Shown here: positions 24,735 through 33,956 of the stretch, piece after piece | How positions within the stretch are numbered: position 1 is the first letter of the stretch | Layout of the letters: every line of letters begins with the position of its first letter | Notes under the pieces: generated by a model | What the model was told of the DNA's origin: nothing | Databases searched by the model: none | What the model saw: only the letters and a program-made list of their open reading frames with translations | Made by a program: the position numbers and the translations under genes | Assembly: GCA_965637545.1 (NCBI GenBank) | Contig: OZ281499.1 | Location: forward strand, 2,542,001 to 2,606,000 | Direction: 5' to 3' | DNA from: Phallusia mammillata | Taxonomy: Eukaryota | Length of the DNA stretch: 64,000 nt

Positions 24735-27700
24735 ATGGAGGTCAATGGTATCAACGGAAATGGCATCAATGGTCACCATGCTGATGAAACATTTCTTTTT
24801 ACATCTGAGTCTGTCGGTGAAGGCCATCCAGGTATGATAAGCAAAATACAAACTAATGGCATTGCTAGAATATATATCTAGGTTTATTTGTAGCTGTAAT
24901 TGTGTTTAAACCAAGACAAAGATATGCTCAAAATACTGAAGTATCTAAAAAATGCACAACATTTTTGATAAGTGGTGAAAAGTATCAGTTTTATTTAAAT
25001 AATTAAAAAATCTAGGACATACTTATGCAATGTAACAAATGCTCAAGTAATGAAAAAAGTCGCTTTGAAAAGTGGTAAAAACTACACTTTCTATGGTTAA
25101 CCTCCTGATATTAATTTTATTTTTTCTTTCTTGTGTTTTGTTTTGACTTATAAAGTCTTAACTACTGCAGCGGATAACAATGGTTAATTAATTTTTTTTT
25201 TCATTTTTAGATAAACTTTGTGACCAGATCAGTGATGCAATCCTTGACGCTCATCTTGCGATCGATCCAGATGCAAAAGTTGCATGTGGTCAGTTTCATT
25301 ATTCAACAGACTGAATGTTTCTTAGTCTTCCTATTGGATTTAAATACAGAAATTTCAAATTTTAACCATACATGTTCTTAGTAAATTTGCTGCAATCGAT
25401 CTAAACTCAAAATACATGTTTAGAAACATTTGCAAAAACTGGGATGATTTTGGTCGGTGGTGAGATTACTTCCAAAGCTGTCATTGACTACCAGAAAGTT
25501 ATTCGGGACACAGTGAAGCACATCGGTTACGACGACTCCAGCAAGGGTATGTTAAAAGTAGTACTCTGATATCTAAACAACAATTTCAGTAATGGATTAA
25601 AACCATCAACAGCAAGGCTTAAACTGATGATCGATGTGTGTCTTTTTTAACTGTAAAACAGTAAAACCAATATACTTTTATAGTATCCTTGGTTAGAATA
25701 CAACTATTTTATTGTTTATAGTGTTGCAATATTTTTTTGCCAATTTAATTTCATGTTTTTTAGGTTTTGATGGCAAAACATGCAATGTTTTAATCGCCAT
25801 CGAGCAGCAGTGTATTGAAATTGCTGATGCTGTCCACATTGGCAAGAAAGAAGAAGACATTGGTGCTGGAGATCAGGGCTTGATGTTTGGGTACGCTACA
25901 GATGAAACAGAGGAATGCATGCCAATGACAATCATGCTAGCACATCGCCTTAACGCCCAACTGTCCAAGCTCCGAAGAGATGGAACTCTTGGATGGCTTA
26001 GGCCAGACTCCAAAACCCAAGTACTTACATTCATTTCTTATGATACACTATTGATTAGAAAAATATAGTTAGCAAAACAAAACCGACCTTTTAAGATCAT
26101 TAAAAAACCAATACAGTAAACCTTGGTTAAACTGGATTCAGTAAATCCAGATCTTCACCTAATCCGGTCAATTTGGGTCCAATGTGGTCTGCATTAACTG
26201 AAGTTAACTGTTTAGAATGTGACAACTAACAAATATCATAAAAAAATATTAAAAATATGTTTGGCTCTAGGTCACAATTGAGCACCGCCTTCAAGATGGA
26301 GCAGTTATCCCCCTCCGCGTACACACAATTGTAATCTCAACACAGCATGATGAAAGTGTAAATGTCAAAACATTGCGCAAAGAGATTTTGGAAAAGGTTT
26401 GTGTGTTGTTAATTTTTTTGTTGAGCAATGTATGGCAAAAAATTCTGTAAAAACGTGTTCACATAAAATGCAATGTCTATGTGTAATGTAAAAAAGGCGA
26501 AAAGGCGAAATAGAGTCAAAAAAAACTTTTACGCTTTTTGACCTAGAAAATGTTTTGAATTTAATAATAAAGATATACTATGTTCCTTTTAGGTGATCTA
26601 TGCAGTTGTCCCTAACGAATACCTTGACGAAAACACCATTTACCACATTCAGCCTTCTGGACTATTTTTGATTGGAGGCCCAATGGTAAGTACTTGTGAG
26701 CAAAAACTGCTGTGGCTCATCTGTTGTTTTGAGCATTTTCTGTTTTCATCCCACTTCATTGCATGACATTTAACCCACTTTTGTGGTTATTTTCATTTTG
26801 CTAACTCTTTTACGGCTCTGTTTGCATGACCGTCTGAGCGTTGTAAAGAAGTTATAAGAAGTCATGTCAAGACCCATTTAAATTCTGCACAATACCTTTA
26901 GCCTACTAGTGCCAATATTTGCGAAGTAAAACCAATAAAAAGTCCTGGGAATTTCTGCATGAGCAAACAGTTGTTGGCACGCTCACACACGATCTAGCAC
27001 TTTTCAAGTTTCCCTTACTTGGCACTTTTCGTAGAGGGAATACAATTCATCCTTTGTCAAACTTCTTTAAATGCTAATTTGCTCGTCTATTTCTGTTTGA
27101 CTTTATTGCAGCAACGCCCCTTTAGTTGTTGACCGAGGGGTTTATTATCATCTTTGTTTTGAACTTGTCAAGCAAAAGTCAACTTTTGCTCCACAAGAAA
27201 CCTTTTGTTGAGTGAAGCAACAGTATTGGGCTTGTCTGGAAACGATTTTGCTGACTCCGCGATTGTGTTGTCATAAAACTTGATTATTCAGGGAGACGCG
27301 GGCCTTACTGGTCGCAAGATCATTGTTGACACTTACGGCGGCTGGGGCGCACACGGAGGCGGGGCTTTTTCGGGCAAAGATCCCTCCAAAGTCGATCGCT
27401 CAGCCGCCTATGCAGCACGCTGGGTAGCAAAATCTCTTGTGAAGGCTGGACTTTGCAAACGTGTCTTAGTGCAGGTGATTGTTAATGAAATGCCCTCACT
27501 CTTTTTCTATACTACCACCTTCAAAACGAGTTCGTTTTTGCGCTGTAGGTGGCGTACGCGATAGGAATAGCAGAGCCTATGGCGGTGTACGTTCACAGTT
27601 ATGGCACAAGTAAATACAGCAACAACCAACTCCATGACATCGTGTGCCATAACTTTGACTTGCGTCCCGGAATTATCATTAGGTAAACTTGTAGTTGTCT

Positions 27701-27873
27701 ATTAGCGACGAGGACTGCTTTGCCAACCTTTTTACTTTGGTTCTTGCAGGAATCTTAAACTGAAAACTCCGATATACCAGAGCACTTGTGCATGCGGGCA
27801 TTTTGGCAGAGAAGGCTTTACCTGGGAGAAAATCAAACCTATATTGATTCCGGAAAAGCTTAAGGATTACTAA
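24735..27873 (+). CDS. MAT: S-adenosylmethionine synthetase, isoform A (proximal 3' cassette)
   Basis: Shared exons 24735-24831 ([11 protein letters not shown]), 25211-25288, 25424-25546, 25764-26020 ([16 protein letters not shown]), 26271-26396 and 26593-26685. Cassette A exons are 27292-27474 ([19 protein letters not shown]), 27549-27682 and 27750-27873 ([12 protein letters not shown] stop). AATAAA is at 28171. Confidence 0.9.
25345..25353 (+). promoter_or_regulatory. METTL16-type UACAGAAA motif / cryptic 3' splice site in MAT intron 2
   Basis: TACAGAAAT at 25345-25353, in the intron that splits the VAC-E|T codon. Use of the AG at 25348-25349 gives a stop at 25379-25381. Confidence 0.5.
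26114..26210. mobile_element. pogo/Tigger-like MITE (short form) in MAT intron 4
   Basis: TA|CAGTAAACCTTGGTTAA...GAAGTTAACTG. Confidence 0.7.
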
Positions 27874-28860
27874 CAATATTTGATTTTAAACACCTGCAGT
27901 TTTTATCTTACTTTTAAAAGCTCACTTCGCAAACTTTAGACTGCCGATTTCTTCACTTTTCGTATCTTTTTATGCACATCACCGCCACATGCTGTACAGA
28001 TAATTTGAAAAAATGTCCGAAAAACGGTTTCGCTTCTAATTGGAAGTTTTTGGTGATGGGAATTTAAGGGTTGTTGTTTTTATTGTAGTACATGCCTCAG
28101 CAAACGAAGCGTTAGTTTTGAGTACATTTAGACTTGTTAATTCATTCAGTAGTATGGTGTTGATGTCGAAAATAAAAGGTTCTAATACACATCGAGTGAT
28201 ACCTTTTGGCAAACATGTTTGACCTCTTTGATGAGTTCACTTTGACGAAACGCACACAGAACTTTTTCCATCTGTTACTCTCTCAACTTTGGCGCCAGGT
28301 AATGTCTCGTTGTCGGATTTTGGGCAAAACGGTGGGTTAACCAATTAACACTCGGTGATGCGAATGGCCTAGCTTCTCACGCAGAATTGTTTGTCTTTTG
28401 CATGTGGCTTGTTTTTTTTAGCTTCTGCATGTTTAATTTTTGTTTTCTCTTCTTCGCTGTGGGTTTGGTGAGACCAATTTGCTTAAGTTATAATGGGCGT
28501 TTTAGAAGCAAAAGAATTTCAATTTTAACTGAAACTTTTCGTAGTATTTTATGCCAACATTTTCCAATCATGCAAACCATTCGCTTTTGACATTTACTTT
28601 AATCTCTATTATCTTTTTATCCAATGAAAACTTTCTTTTCAGAAATCAAAAAGAATTGAGTTATTACTCTAATTTAGACTTATAATTTTACAAAAATAAA
28701 AAAAAACTAGTAAACAAAATCTAATAATGGCAAGAAAATTGTTTGCTGTTGTATAGCATCCACCAATTTAAGGCCAAATTTCGAATGTAATTTTCACCCA
28801 AAACAACTTCTGCTACACACAGACTTGCACAACTTTCTAACCAATGTGTTATTGCAACAG

Positions 28861-31800
28861 GGTGATGCTGGACTCACTGGACGCAAAATCATCGTCGACA
28901 CTTACGGTGGCTGGGGTGCCCACGGTGGTGGAGCTTTTTCAGGGAAAGATTTCTCCAAAGTTGACCGTTCGGCCGCATATGCTGCACGATGGGTCGCCAA
29001 ATCCCTAGTGAAGGCTGGGCTGTGTCGTCGTGTCCTTGTTCAGGTAAGAACACCTTGAGTAAGCTACAGGCAGTGCACGTTGTTTTTGACATGTAAGTCC
29101 CCATCAGTGCAACTGGTGACAAGACATAGGCCGCATTGGCTAGTGTAGTCATCTAACGGCTCTACAATTGTTGGGTGGGGCAGGCTGAGAGCTCACCTAT
29201 GATAAGGACGCTCCATTTTTGTATATGTTTATGTTGGACTGGGTCAAAGTTTTTTAAGCCATTTGAGTCCCCTGTTACTTATCCAACTGAATGCTTGTAT
29301 GTTAGGAGATTTTTTTCTTACTTATTGCGCTAGTTAGTGCCAACGAAATCAACCTCTTTGTCAATTGTCAACTTAACGTATGATGCAATTGATTTAAGGC
29401 TATTAAAACAGGAACCAACTAAAGGTTAGCAAACCATTCGCTTTTATTACACATTAAAGCTCCTTATGACAAGCACAAGCAATAAAAACCCGATTGTAAT
29501 TTATGATTAAGTTTCTGCAACTCATGGCTTTGCAAACAAACCGCAGTTCGCTTTTCGCCTACATTTGGCATTACACAACCTTTGCACACACAGTTCCAAT
29601 TTAAGCAGCTCCCCAGGTCTCGGAACACACAAAAACCAGTTTACGAGACTCGCAGACTCCAAGCGTGGGACTCTACAAATTTGCTTTCGGTATTTGACTG
29701 CAGCCACACGCGGCCTGCATCAGTGCAAACCCCTTATCGTTGATTGACAGGCGCAAAATAAGCAAAAACCTTAATTGAAGTCCTGTTTATCGTCCCCACG
29801 TATGTAGGTGTGCAGGGGGCTTGACGTCAAATTGCCTGATGTGAAAAATGCGACCTGTTGCTAGTCTGCCTTCTGTTGTAGTGTTTGTGCACATGCTGCA
29901 ACGTGCAACGTGGCTAAACTCGTAGTTTTAAATCATCTTGAAACTCTAATTTTGAGTGTTAACACGTAGCTTTTAAATGTAGGGCCACTGCTTTCAAACA
30001 CACAACTTATGGTACTTGGCTTGTTGATTAGGCTTTACTATTTACCCTGGTGTGTTTACACAAGACATAAAACTCCATGAAATGTAGCGCAGTTGCATTT
30101 TTTTGACAAAACGAAATTCGTGGTGTTTGGTTTTTATGCTTAAATCGCTTTAAAATCATCTTGAACACTTACAGGTGTCTAGTTTTGGGTGGTGAAAAAG
30201 TAGGGACACTACATTTCAACAAAAACAACTTTGTGGTACTTAACCTATTTTGGCCAATTCAACCTAGTATTTTCATGTGTCGACCAGTCTTTTTGACATG
30301 ACCATCTTTAGTGTCTTTAAATTTTATGCTGTTGCTAGCATAAAGGGATATGGTAGAAAAACGCTTCTAACATGTTTTTCTTGCAGGTTTCATACGCCAT
30401 TGGCATTTCTGAGCCCTTGTCCGTATATGTAAGCTCATACGGGACTTCTAAACTCAGTGACAAAGATCTTCTCACAATTATCCATGATAACTTCGATCTT
30501 CGACCAGGAATTATTGTCAAGTAAGCAATACTTTTAAAAAATATCGACCAAATTGCTTTTCAGAGCTTAGTATAAAACTATGTTCGATGATAAGTAAATT
30601 GTATCAGGTGTACATGCACTGATGATGACAACAGTGATTGTTGAAACATCTGCGTAATGTATTGTAGACACACAAGTTCTTTGGCAGTAATGTTTATGAT
30701 TAAATTACCCTTCAGGTCCGTGTATAGTGTTCCCAAATTGTATCTTTTAATTGAAAGCTACATGCTTTTGACTATTGCATGCTAAAACCACGCAATGTTG
30801 CGACTTTTTAAAGCAAAATTTGACAAAAAAAGAAAAAAATAGGACGATTTTTTAGTGCATCAATCAAGTAAAATTCCCATTATTAATAAATTGATAATAT
30901 CTGTTCTCGCTAAGCTGTGACGCAAATCCACGCTTGAAACACATCTTTTTACTCATAGTGTTACGGTATAAGCAGCAATCATGCCATGTGCAATCAAAAC
31001 ACGACTTGTTATGAATCCATGCAGTTGTTTGCATTGCTCTGGCAGTCGATACTCGATGGTGTTTTAATCGACCTACTTTATGCCATCAGTGCCTTTGTTA
31101 GTAATATGTACAATGGCACAATACCTATTCCTAAACATGTACAACTCCTTGTGTAGTGCTTAATAGGGGGAAATTTTGCTTATAGTGGTTGAACATGTAA
31201 ATAATATGTTCTCATTTTACGTGGGAAAGTATCGGATAACGGCCTTGCGCACGTGACAATGATTTTGTTTTCCGTTATCGTGTGCCCATAAAAAAGGCTA
31301 ACTTAAACTTGACAACCTTAAATGCTTAACTTTGTTCGTTTTTATTCTTTGTCTGATTGACACGGGGGAATAAATTGATTTCGGAAAAACCAATTTAATT
31401 ATTATGAGTTGCGCAGACAATAATAAACCGCCAATCACAATGTTCCATATTCATAACATGCAATAGCTATTTTAATATAGGGGGAATTTATGCTTTTTAC
31501 GCCCCTACATCTCCGAATAAACTGTAACAGTGTCCTAGTTATAGTTCACATTAAATGAGACAAAATGATATTTTCACCTCTAAACAAAGGGCCCAAAAAT
31601 ATGTGATAATATATGCATGAATATGCAGAACATTTAAAACGGCGTTTATTGTTGTATGTTATTAACTTGTCTTTTATGTCGTCACAAAGCAGCACGTTCG
31701 TTCCGGTTATGTCGCGTTACATTATCACGAAGTTGTCAAATCATCGACCAGTAAATCCAGTACGGATAAATGACAAAAATGTCTGTGTTATCCAACTTAG

Positions 31801-32805
31801 TTTTTCGTTTCACCAACCTCGTGCAGTTGACCCTTTTAACTATTTAGGCTGGTTTGCACATCACTTTTACACAGCAAACAGTGAAAATTCAAATAATCTA
31901 TATGTAGTACATACAAGGTAGGCTACCACCTGTAAACTATTTCCCACAGCATTTTACAAACCAAACAGGTCGCAAACTTTGTAAAACGCAAAACGTTGTG
32001 TACACGACCAAAGTTTCAAATTGGATGAGACTATAGTCTTTATTCTCATACATTATTGCAAACAGCTGTTTTAAAAGTTACTTGAATGCATTTTTGGTTG
32101 TCTTGAAGAACTATAATTTGTGTGTTTGTTGAATCACTGTTTGCGAGAAGTTGCTGTTTGTTGTCATTTGCTGTTAAGCCAGGCTGCTTGTTGACGCACA
32201 CGCAATATTGCTAAATATAAACAAAACAAGCTTTGAAACAATGTAGAAAATTCCAATCAAGCGCACATTTCAAATAGCCATGGCTAATTGTTCAGCCTAA
32301 AGCAGGGGTGGGCAACCTTTGTCATTGTGGGGCCAAATACAATTCCGATGATTAGATCACGGGCCCCACCTTCATATAAACTAAGGTGCAGCAATGCAGC
32401 ATGTTGTCAGGTCGCAGAAAAATAGCACCCAGCGCACCAATCGGCTCAAAAAAAATAATAATTGGTCTCGTTTGTCAGTACATTTGAAATCCAAGTGTCT
32501 CTGCGGGCCGCACAACAATTGGCCGCAAGTTGTCCACCTCTGGCCTGAAGCCTTTGTTCTGAAAGACTTTTATGTTATTTGAATGCTTTTGGAAATACCC
32601 ACAATTTATTCGTTCATACATTTTGTGCAGGGATTTGGACCTTCGTAAACCAGTCTACAAGAAAACCGCCTGTTACGGCCACTTCGGACGAGATACCTTT
32701 ACTTGGGAAAAACCAAAAGACCTCGAAATTCGACCAAAAATTCAAGCTCTCCTTGAGAAAACCGAATCGCCAGTTTACAAACGCGTTAAGTACGGAAGCC
32801 ATTGA
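28861..32805 (+). CDS. MAT: S-adenosylmethionine synthetase, alternative distal 3' cassette (isoform B; splices to exon 6 ending 26685)
   Basis: Exons 28861-29043 (183 nt, DFSKVDRS), 30387-30520 (134 nt) and 32631-32805 (TACYGHFGR...YKRVKYGSH stop). The first two exons have the same lengths and phases as in cassette A. No second set of 5' exons lies between the cassettes. Confidence 0.92.
29060..29200 (-). mobile_element. Hammerhead retroelement family A copy 3 (degenerate, antisense to MAT)
   Basis: Reverse complement reads GUUGCA-CUGAUGG-GGAC..GUC-AAAA-CAACGUGCACUG-CC-UGUAGC. It ends 16 nt after the exon 7b donor. Confidence 0.75.
30611..30660 (+). ncRNA. Minimal type I hammerhead (family D), sense in MAT intron 8b
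   Basis: UGCA-CUGAUGA-U-GACAA[cagUGA]UUGUU-GAAA-CAUC^UGCG, with cleavage predicted after 30650. Stems I and II pair. Confidence 0.7.
32303..32542. mobile_element. hAT-type MITE (TIR CAGGGGTGGGCAAC)
   Basis: TSD gcctaaag/gcctgaag. It ends 88 nt upstream of MAT exon 9b. Confidence 0.85.
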
Positions 32806-33956
32806 CTCGAACTGCAATACAACATTTAGCTGCCGTGTTTTAAGTCCTGTTGTCCATTACGCATTGTTTTGTCCCCCTTTTTCTCATTTTCACGGTGCAG
32901 ACATGTTTCAATTTGAATTGTGTTTTATTCATTTCAGCGGATATTCCATTTTACTTTAAACCCGACCGCAAATGGCACGGTGAAAGTACTCACACAGAAG
33001 AATTGTTTGCTTGCTTGCGACGTCGGATTTTATCAATTGTTTGTGCCTTTTAAATGTGTTTTTACCGTTTTCCACTGCGTCGGAAACTCGGGCGTTTCAA
33101 ATAAAGTGTTTATGGGTTGTACCATAACACAACACGTGTGTAAAGACCAGTGTAAGATCCAAACTTCGCAATGCCCCTCGTCACGTGTGTACTGTGACGT
33201 CATAAAGTACATTGTCCCTCTGCAAAAATAAACCCCATTTCAAACCCACTTACATCTAATATCGTATGTAATGACTTTTTCGTAACTGACGTGTCATTAT
33301 GATGTAATATATACGCTAAACGTATCGCAAGAGCTTAACACAATTTTCTGTGTCTTGCAAAGCTTGTAAATCCATGTCCTATTTAATAAATGCAAATCGC
33401 CTCGGTGTAACAAAACTAAAAAAACTGAAAGCCTCATTTCGTTGTTTTTACTGAGCCGTTTTCGAAAACACAAAATTGGTGGCTTTCAACTTTTCAACAT
33501 TTTCCCCAAAATGTTAACGAACCCTTACAGTCTTTGTTGCAATTGTTCCCCATTGTGGCGTCACAAACATTACCCGCTTTTTTGTTTCACGCTTCATTTA
33601 CGCACGTTTGTGTTTAAATAGTCGAGTTAAATAAAGTTTTAAACAACGCACTGTTGACTGTCTTGCTATCAGTCGTAAGAGGTGTGACATAAAAACGCTG
33701 AATTGTGGGTAAAAAATGCTGACGCTAAGTGCTATTAAACTGGGGTGAGGGTTTATAACAATGTAAAAAACCATGTGCCTGTGTAAAAGGGATTCAGCAA
33801 TATTCTGACATCAGCAAACATGGCTTTACATCAATTGCATCATACGTTGTCAATGACACTTAAATATAGATCGTGTAGTTGTTGTAACGAGGTTAATTTT
33901 TTTGGCACTAACTAGGGCTATGAGTGAATGGAAATAAATCAACTTCTACATACAAG

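Follow-up and report, generated by a model that had tools for sequence, protein, structure and literature searches.

The ascidian Phallusia mammillata carries a single animal-type methionine adenosyltransferase (MAT) gene, which very likely yields two enzyme forms through a choice between two alternative terminal cassettes of three exons each. MAT makes nearly all cellular S-adenosylmethionine (SAM), the main methyl donor. The gene lies on the + strand of the window analysed here (64,000 nucleotides (nt) of contig OZ281499.1, forward-strand positions 2,542,001 to 2,606,000 of assembly GCA_965637545.1) and runs from 24735 to about 33650 in window coordinates, which are used throughout. Exons 1-6 are followed by cassette A (exons 7a, 8a and 9a) and then by cassette B (exons 7b, 8b and 9b), each providing a complete 3′ half for a gene of nine-exon type. 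Both cassettes are joined to exon 6 in RNA, the tandem layout recurs in other ascidians, and the sequences of both bear the mark of purifying selection. In this arrangement, which is ancient and kept by selection, B is the canonical and major form and A the minor one.

The shared part of the gene, exons 1-6, is common to all transcripts and has a stop-free translation covering residues 1-258. Beyond it, the two cassettes have canonical AG/GT borders and equal phases, with a first exon of 183 nt and a second of 134 nt in each, separated by introns of 74 and 67 nt in cassette A and of 1343 and 2110 nt in cassette B. The Pfam families PF00438, PF02772 and PF02773 are matched exon by exon above their curated cut-offs on contig C6, with the C domain being matched by both cassettes. 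Isoform A is 404 amino acids (aa) long and isoform B 421 aa. We aligned the exon pieces to database proteins and found isoform B identical at 420/421 positions to a P. mammillata S-adenosylmethionine synthase in UniProt (A0A6F9DJM8), which in its full length consists of exons 1-6 plus cassette B, while a second entry (A0A6F9DKZ8) corresponds to form B but shifts frame near its end. An earlier reading of the window, made from the sequence alone, had described a shared exon 6 followed by two complete cassettes with exons of 183 and 134 nt, each with its own stop codon and AATAAA, and with the active-site motifs, including KVDRS, kept in both. All of these elements are found, and the motifs are intact in the translations of 7a and 7b. 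The sequence-only reading had placed exons 8b and 9b one base too high, as judged by the AG/GT rule and by the RNA joint 29043>30387, and the positions are corrected here:

24735 to 24831, + strand: MAT exon 1, coding part, with the ATG at 24735 and a translation continuous with exons 2-6 and identical to UniProt A0A6F9DJM8 (P0153).
25211 to 25288, + strand: exon 2, shared, with AG/GT borders and a match to Pfam S-AdoMet_synt_N at 25210-25296.
25424 to 25546, + strand: exon 3, shared, with AG/GT borders and a Pfam N-domain match at 25387-25551.
25764 to 26020, + strand: exon 4, shared and including the gating-loop region, with a Pfam M-domain match at 25856-26116 and an in-frame translation.
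26271 to 26396, + strand: exon 5, shared, with a Pfam M-domain match at 26271-26408 and an in-frame translation.
26593 to 26685, + strand: exon 6, with which the shared part of the gene closes; its GT donor is at 26686, where RNA contigs of the upstream shared exons stop and two joints depart.
27292 to 27474, + strand: exon 7a of cassette A, 183 nt, with joint 26685>27292 in 4/4 runs and 59/61 aa as in 7b.
27549 to 27682, + strand: exon 8a of cassette A, 134 nt, with joint 27474>27549 in 4/4 runs; it resembles Clavelina exon 8A.
27750 to 27873, + strand: exon 9a, coding part, with joint 27682>27750 in 4/4 runs, supported by its translation and ending in the stop TAA at 27871-27873.
27874 to 28199, + strand: 3′ untranslated region (UTR) of cassette A; its AATAAA lies at 28171-28176, and in four runs the A-type contigs stop at 28170-28199.
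28861 to 29043, + strand: exon 7b of cassette B, 183 nt, with joint 26685>28861 in 4/4 runs at the highest depth.
30387 to 30520, + strand: exon 8b of cassette B, 134 nt, with joint 29043>30387 in 4/4 runs; the contig beyond 30520 is the start of 9b.
32631 to 32805, + strand: exon 9b, coding part, with the stop TGA at 32803-32805; its C-terminus is that of A0A6F9DJM8 bar one residue and includes a tail that only the B forms of tunicates have.
32806 to 33650, + strand, end approximate: 3′ UTR of cassette B, with B contigs running about 1020 nt past exon 8b and AATAAA at 33630, preceded by further AATAAA signals at 33100, 33227 and 33385.

To see which cassettes are used in RNA, assembled Logan contigs of four transcriptome-like runs, one from each of four studies, were aligned to positions 26610-32609. 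Five GT..AG joints, 26685>27292, 27474>27549, 27682>27750, 26685>28861 and 29043>30387, are present in every one of the four runs, and each of the two joints that leave exon 6 continues along its own cassette. No joint crossing from A to B, such as 7a-8a-9b, was found in the Phallusia contigs of these runs. The A contigs stop at 28170-28199, at or just after the AATAAA at 28171 and before exon 7b, and the B contigs, judged by their length, stop near 33650, past the AATAAA at 33630. Contig depths for A and B are 15.9 and 484.8, 15.4 and 59.8, 11 and 330, and 7.4 and 244, so that A accounts for about 3% of the combined depth in three runs and for about 20% in one, with B being the major form. 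A second index search found the A-specific stretch in 18 RNA-like runs from five studies. The earlier proposal that one gene gives rise to two MAT isoforms through alternative terminal cassettes is thus borne out by both exon 6 joints in all four runs, and the concern that only one cassette might ever be spliced falls away. Elsewhere in the aligned region, pieces of RNA contigs match positions 32294-32516 and 30615-30647, within the introns of cassette B, with unrelated flanks on both sides, and an inverted repeat (GGGTGGGCAACC ... GTTGTCCACC) is present within 32300-32540. These matches look like copies of a dispersed element, similar to a miniature inverted-repeat transposable element and transcribed elsewhere, not like MAT exons.

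Pfam scans of the whole 240-Mb assembly show that the two cassettes have only one set of upstream exons to draw on. No second set of N-domain or M-domain exons was found in them, the single set being the one upstream of exon 6, while the C-domain exons occur in two sets on the same contig; the supposition that cassette B has 5′ exons of its own is contradicted by this result. The sole other MAT in the assembly is an intronless metK-like open reading frame of 401 aa on contig C104 (L001:760-1965), which lies in an AT-rich context, adjoins an open reading frame on the opposite strand, and is presumably bacterial, coming from a symbiont or a contaminant.

The two copies have diverged to very different degrees along their length. 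Exons 7a and 7b encode proteins that are identical at 59/61 residues, with 144/183 identical DNA positions, and differ at 34/61 third positions (proportions of synonymous and non-synonymous differences, pS and pN, of 0.70 and 0.041), in agreement with the near-identical proteins and mostly changed third positions that had been noted from the sequence. In exons 8-9, only 43/71 residues are identical between A and B and pS exceeds 0.9. Taken over 396 aligned coding bases, the cassettes are 67% identical in DNA; their introns are non-alignable and of very different lengths, and around exon 7 the likeness at the DNA level ends no more than three bases from the exon's borders (27289-27476 versus 28858-29045). 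Variation among strains is also found in this exon, where runs X5 and X9 have eight differences in 181 nt of exon 7b (28890-29010), with none in exon 8b and none in a 766-782 nt A contig. All eight (8/8) are synonymous third-position changes, which at the population level adds to the support for purifying selection. Conversion from 7a was considered as their source and rejected, since the base agrees with that of 7a at just one of the eight positions; the clustered differences may reflect a divergent haplotype.

The tandem layout is not peculiar to Phallusia. The loci of Clavelina lepadiformis (L007) and Styela clava (L008) likewise contain exons 1-6, then an A-like cassette, and then a B-like cassette, with exons of 183 and 134 nt, as verified from the splice borders in Clavelina and in keeping with tblastn matches in Styela. 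Each Clavelina cassette is closest to its positional counterpart: exon 8 of the first is 79.5% identical to Phallusia 8a and 59% to 8b, and exon 8 of the second is 84% identical to 8b and 70% to 8a. Over exons 7-8 together, identity is 93/105 between the A cassettes of Phallusia and Clavelina and 98/105 between their B cassettes, as against 88/105 between A and B within Phallusia. Synonymous sites in these exons are strongly diverged throughout (pS 0.77-0.88), and pN/pS lies between 0.04 and 0.19, with 0.11 for the A orthologues and 0.04 for the B orthologues, so that the non-synonymous evolution of A is about 2.4 times faster than that of B. These ratios show purifying selection on both cassettes, and, with orthologous cassettes being closer than paralogues within a species, they uphold the old duplication and twofold constraint proposed from the Phallusia sequence alone. 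The recurrence of the layout in the assemblies of other species also disposes of the worry that the duplication was made in assembly.

Evidence from proteins and gene models extends this pattern. A maximum-likelihood tree of the C-terminal region places 12/12 A-type tunicate sequences in one clade (support 92/95) and the B-types among other metazoan MATs; it used about 150 columns, and its deep branching is weakly resolved. Because the A-then-B layout is common to three ascidians and the A-types, grouped in a single clade, have substitutions in common, the duplication is older than the split of Phlebobranchia, Aplousobranchia and Stolidobranchia. In RefSeq, S. clava has an isoform X1 that is B-type (422 aa) and an isoform X2 that is A-type (403 aa), with the N-terminus in common, and the Ciona intestinalis entry named isoform X1 is A-type. 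In three pairs of transcriptome proteins, the N-terminus is nearly the same in both members (and wholly so, across the 45 residues shown, in two of the pairs) and is followed by either the A or the B C-terminus. Phallusia, Clavelina, Styela and Ciona all retain an intact A open reading frame. None of the 120 best matches listed for the A C-terminus, in a search of proteins of similar length, is a named non-tunicate with the A-type signature. An over-long Lamellibrachia model was rejected as an example of a second cassette, since it repeats an identical segment and is probably an annotation or assembly artefact. In Ciona savignyi, five Ensembl models (P0283, P0285, P0287, P0289 and P0299) pair exons 7-8 of A type with a last exon of B type and are without one residue of the KDPSK motif; these composites may be real hybrid transcripts or artefacts of homology-based prediction.

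The consequence of the cassette choice is a pair of proteins that are identical through residue 258 and differ from residue 259 to the end. The swapped part holds several catalytic residues (half of the catalytic lysines and aspartates) together with the walls of a pocket at the interface of the dimer, which is also where MAT active sites are formed (PMC11413503, PMC7271947). In MAT2A, the allosteric pocket that binds MAT-beta is made up of Gly273-Ala276, Arg313, Leu315, Gln317, Ser331, Phe333 and Tyr335, and in mammals it accommodates this regulatory subunit as well as allosteric drugs (PMC11413503, PMC7271947). All of the published pocket residues except Phe20 and Phe139 appear to map to exons 7-8, within the swapped block. 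For the MAT-beta (MAT2B) homologue itself, the assembly returned one weak match of the RmlD family, at 29 bits and on another contig. Residues specific to A, given in MAT2A numbering that we derived from our alignment of the C-termini, are the change of Tyr or Phe 287 to Pro (12/12 sequences), Leu328 to Met (12/12) and Leu346 to His (11/12), with Val361 to Ile and Ala375 to Ser or Cys as further changes. Form B is distinguished by a tail of about 25 residues that is found only in tunicates and ends in a conserved SP..KR.KY..H. Taken from sequence, these features suggest that A and B may both be active enzymes that would differ in kinetics, regulation or localisation, and the ratio of A to B may be regulated.

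Several points count against the proposal of two enzyme forms from one gene. The RNA nature of the runs was guessed by the index, and the data are contigs, not reads; each joint is anchored in exon 6 by only 27 nt, an assembler overlap; contig depth is only a rough gauge of abundance; and a full-length A transcript was not seen in one piece, with the contigs breaking at exon 6. At the protein level, the existence of isoforms A and B would follow from RNA and predicted translations. Moreover, the near-universal Y377, the tyrosine of the A-A-Y-G-H-F-G-R motif, is lost in 9/12 A-type sequences, and the arginine of GHFGR (R382) is also lost in the A forms of Styela and Ciona, so that A may not be fully competent in catalysis. 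The same losses, along with the small share of A in contig depth, lend themselves to an account in which cassette A is a non-productive decoy that tunes the amount of B mRNA and in which the A protein has no function of its own. We consider this improbable, because the A protein sequence is kept across ascidian orders, which is not expected of a decoy: the frame is intact in four ascidians, the A-types form one clade with fixed diagnostic residues, and pN/pS stays at 0.11 where synonymous sites are saturated.

It is also conceivable that cassette B, or cassette A, is part of a distinct, incomplete or trans-spliced transcription unit that shares neither a promoter nor 5′ exons with the other. 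Tunicates have spliced-leader trans-splicing and operons, and none of the contigs, which break at exon 6, spans exon 1 to exon 9. However, both A and B contigs open on the final 27 nt of exon 6, the genome is without other animal-type N- or M-domain exons to which a cassette could belong, A0A6F9DJM8 joins exons 1-6 to cassette B in one protein, and the N-terminus of Styela X1 and X2 is common to both, leaving this account very improbable. An assembly artefact or a pair of uncollapsed haplotypes has nothing more than general possibility to recommend it and is the least probable of all, being already refuted by the 67% DNA identity of the cassettes, their non-alignable introns, the expression of both, and the occurrence of the layout in two other species. 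The reading that best accommodates the evidence is therefore still that of one gene whose shared 5′ half is completed by either cassette.

Under this two-cassette reading, isoform A would be produced when the exon 6 donor pairs with the proximal 7a acceptor, leading to 7a-8a-9a and cleavage about 300 nt past the stop, and isoform B would be produced when the same donor pairs with the 7b acceptor, 2.2 kb distal, skipping cassette A and leading to 7b-8b-9b. Each choice of acceptor commits the transcript to its own downstream pair of exons and its own poly(A) site. The outcome may be set by competition between the proximal acceptor together with the A poly(A) site on one side and the distal acceptor on the other. 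In evolutionary terms, the arrangement goes back to a tandem duplication of a three-exon block that preceded the divergence of the ascidian orders, and selection has since retained both copies.

Features that might tip this competition were sought in several ways. The pyrimidine tracts are weak at both acceptors (11/20 at 7a and 10/20 at 7b), and acceptor strength was rejected as the reason for the dominance of B because both tracts are similarly weak. SAM sensing by METTL16 acts through hairpins in the 3′ UTR of vertebrate MAT2A and through a 3′ splice site of the sams genes in C. elegans. Such control resembles the choice described here in being a decision in pre-mRNA processing within the 3′ part of a MAT gene, a likeness that lay behind the suggestion of coupling to SAM status in the sequence-only reading. 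The Phallusia gene, however, contains no exact site for the METTL16 nonamer UACAGARAA, and Phallusia, Clavelina and Styela do not have the motif in common. A single site with one mismatch, at 27995 in the 3′ UTR of cassette A, is about what chance would give. In Clavelina, an exact METTL16 nonamer (UACAGAGAA, L007:13222-13230) lies across the 3′ splice site of exon 9A and resembles the methylation site at the C. elegans sams splice site; the Styela counterpart is UGCAGAGAA and Phallusia is without a match. The Clavelina nonamer is probably the product of chance plus coding constraint, being partly forced by the acceptor consensus and the codons that follow. A comparison of the introns and UTRs of Phallusia, Clavelina and Styela for conserved non-coding elements yielded only short matches at chance level and no candidate regulatory RNA structure, and a hairpin in exon 8a (27593-27658) was set aside, as the fold of the whole exon is not significant (z = -1.3).

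A more far-reaching idea, which we regard as possible but doubtful, is that the choice between A and B acts as a switch governed by stage, tissue or the level of methionine or SAM. It would then be a within-gene equivalent of the division of labour between MAT1A and MAT2A, where A, with its altered pocket, could respond differently to product inhibition or to the beta subunit, the B tail could direct localisation or turnover, and A/B heterodimers, already raised as a possibility in the sequence-only reading, could form a third kind of enzyme.

Vertebrates have two MAT catalytic subunits, encoded by the two genes MAT1A and MAT2A. The tunicate pair is similar in consisting of two catalytic subunits that keep the active-site motifs and differ in the regions of the dimer interface and the regulatory pocket. 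It differs in that a single promoter and a single N-terminal half serve both tunicate forms, while vertebrates have two complete genes with their own promoters. Five vertebrate sequences, a sample that is not known to include MAT2A, cluster together in the tree, among other metazoan MATs and apart from both A and B; because the vertebrates group apart from both cassettes, A and B are probably not orthologues of MAT1A and MAT2A, within the limits of the weakly resolved deep branching. In gene architecture, there is a parallel with Drosophila lola and mod(mdg4), in which common 5′ exons are joined to alternative 3′ groups, each of which brings a stop and a poly(A) site of its own. Those genes, however, swap the DNA-binding modules of transcription factors, in mod(mdg4) by trans-splicing, while the MAT gene swaps half of a catalytic core, and the MAT cassettes, unlike theirs, are strict exon-for-exon paralogues.

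Arthropods provide a second case of a single MAT gene that yields two variants through tandem exon duplication. A mutually exclusive exon event has been reported for Drosophila Sam-S (PMC11765297). Over-long insect and decapod models (P0288, P0282, P0281, P0284, P0152, P0154 and P0291) contain two consecutive copies of the gating-loop exon, which implies that pancrustacean Sam-S has a tandemly duplicated, mutually exclusive exon that is independent of the tunicate cassette. There, the duplicated unit is one internal exon, the counterpart of Phallusia exon 4, with common exons on both sides, whereas the tunicate unit is a terminal block. The tunicate cassettes are not mutually exclusive exons in the strict sense, since no downstream exon is common to both forms and A transcripts end before 7b. 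They form alternative terminal-exon cassettes, with joints to either cassette, separate stops and poly(A) sites, and exon-for-exon paralogy in three species. In essence, the tunicate cassette is a different route to MAT variants, one that acts on another part of the enzyme than in arthropods, and is not a new principle.

The earlier remark that this arrangement had not been described holds as far as full-text searches on MAT isoforms, exon duplication or tunicates go, in which we found no paper on it; it does not hold for databases, where RefSeq lists Styela X1 and X2. To our knowledge, the debate on the need for two catalytic isoenzymes in animals has so far drawn on no pair other than mammalian MAT1A/MAT2A. 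Tunicates are the sister group of vertebrates, and their MAT gene offers a natural domain-swap, in which two proteins identical to residue 258 differ only in the half with the pocket that current MAT2A drugs target. The A residues fixed by selection (P287, M328, H346 and the loss of Y377) mark sites at which MAT regulation may be adjusted, while the clean and conserved duplication of a multi-exon terminal cassette could serve as a model for the coordination of splice-site and poly(A)-site choice. Should the switch idea hold, then with the arthropod pair three animal lineages would have independently reached two MAT isoenzymes by three genetic routes. Ciona, Phallusia and Styela are experimentally tractable.

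The surroundings of the gene are also shared in part. In Clavelina (L007:1-5418) as in Styela (L008:1-1019), the gene immediately upstream of MAT encodes a histone acetyltransferase of MYST/MOZ type, and this neighbour is a case of conserved synteny between the two species.

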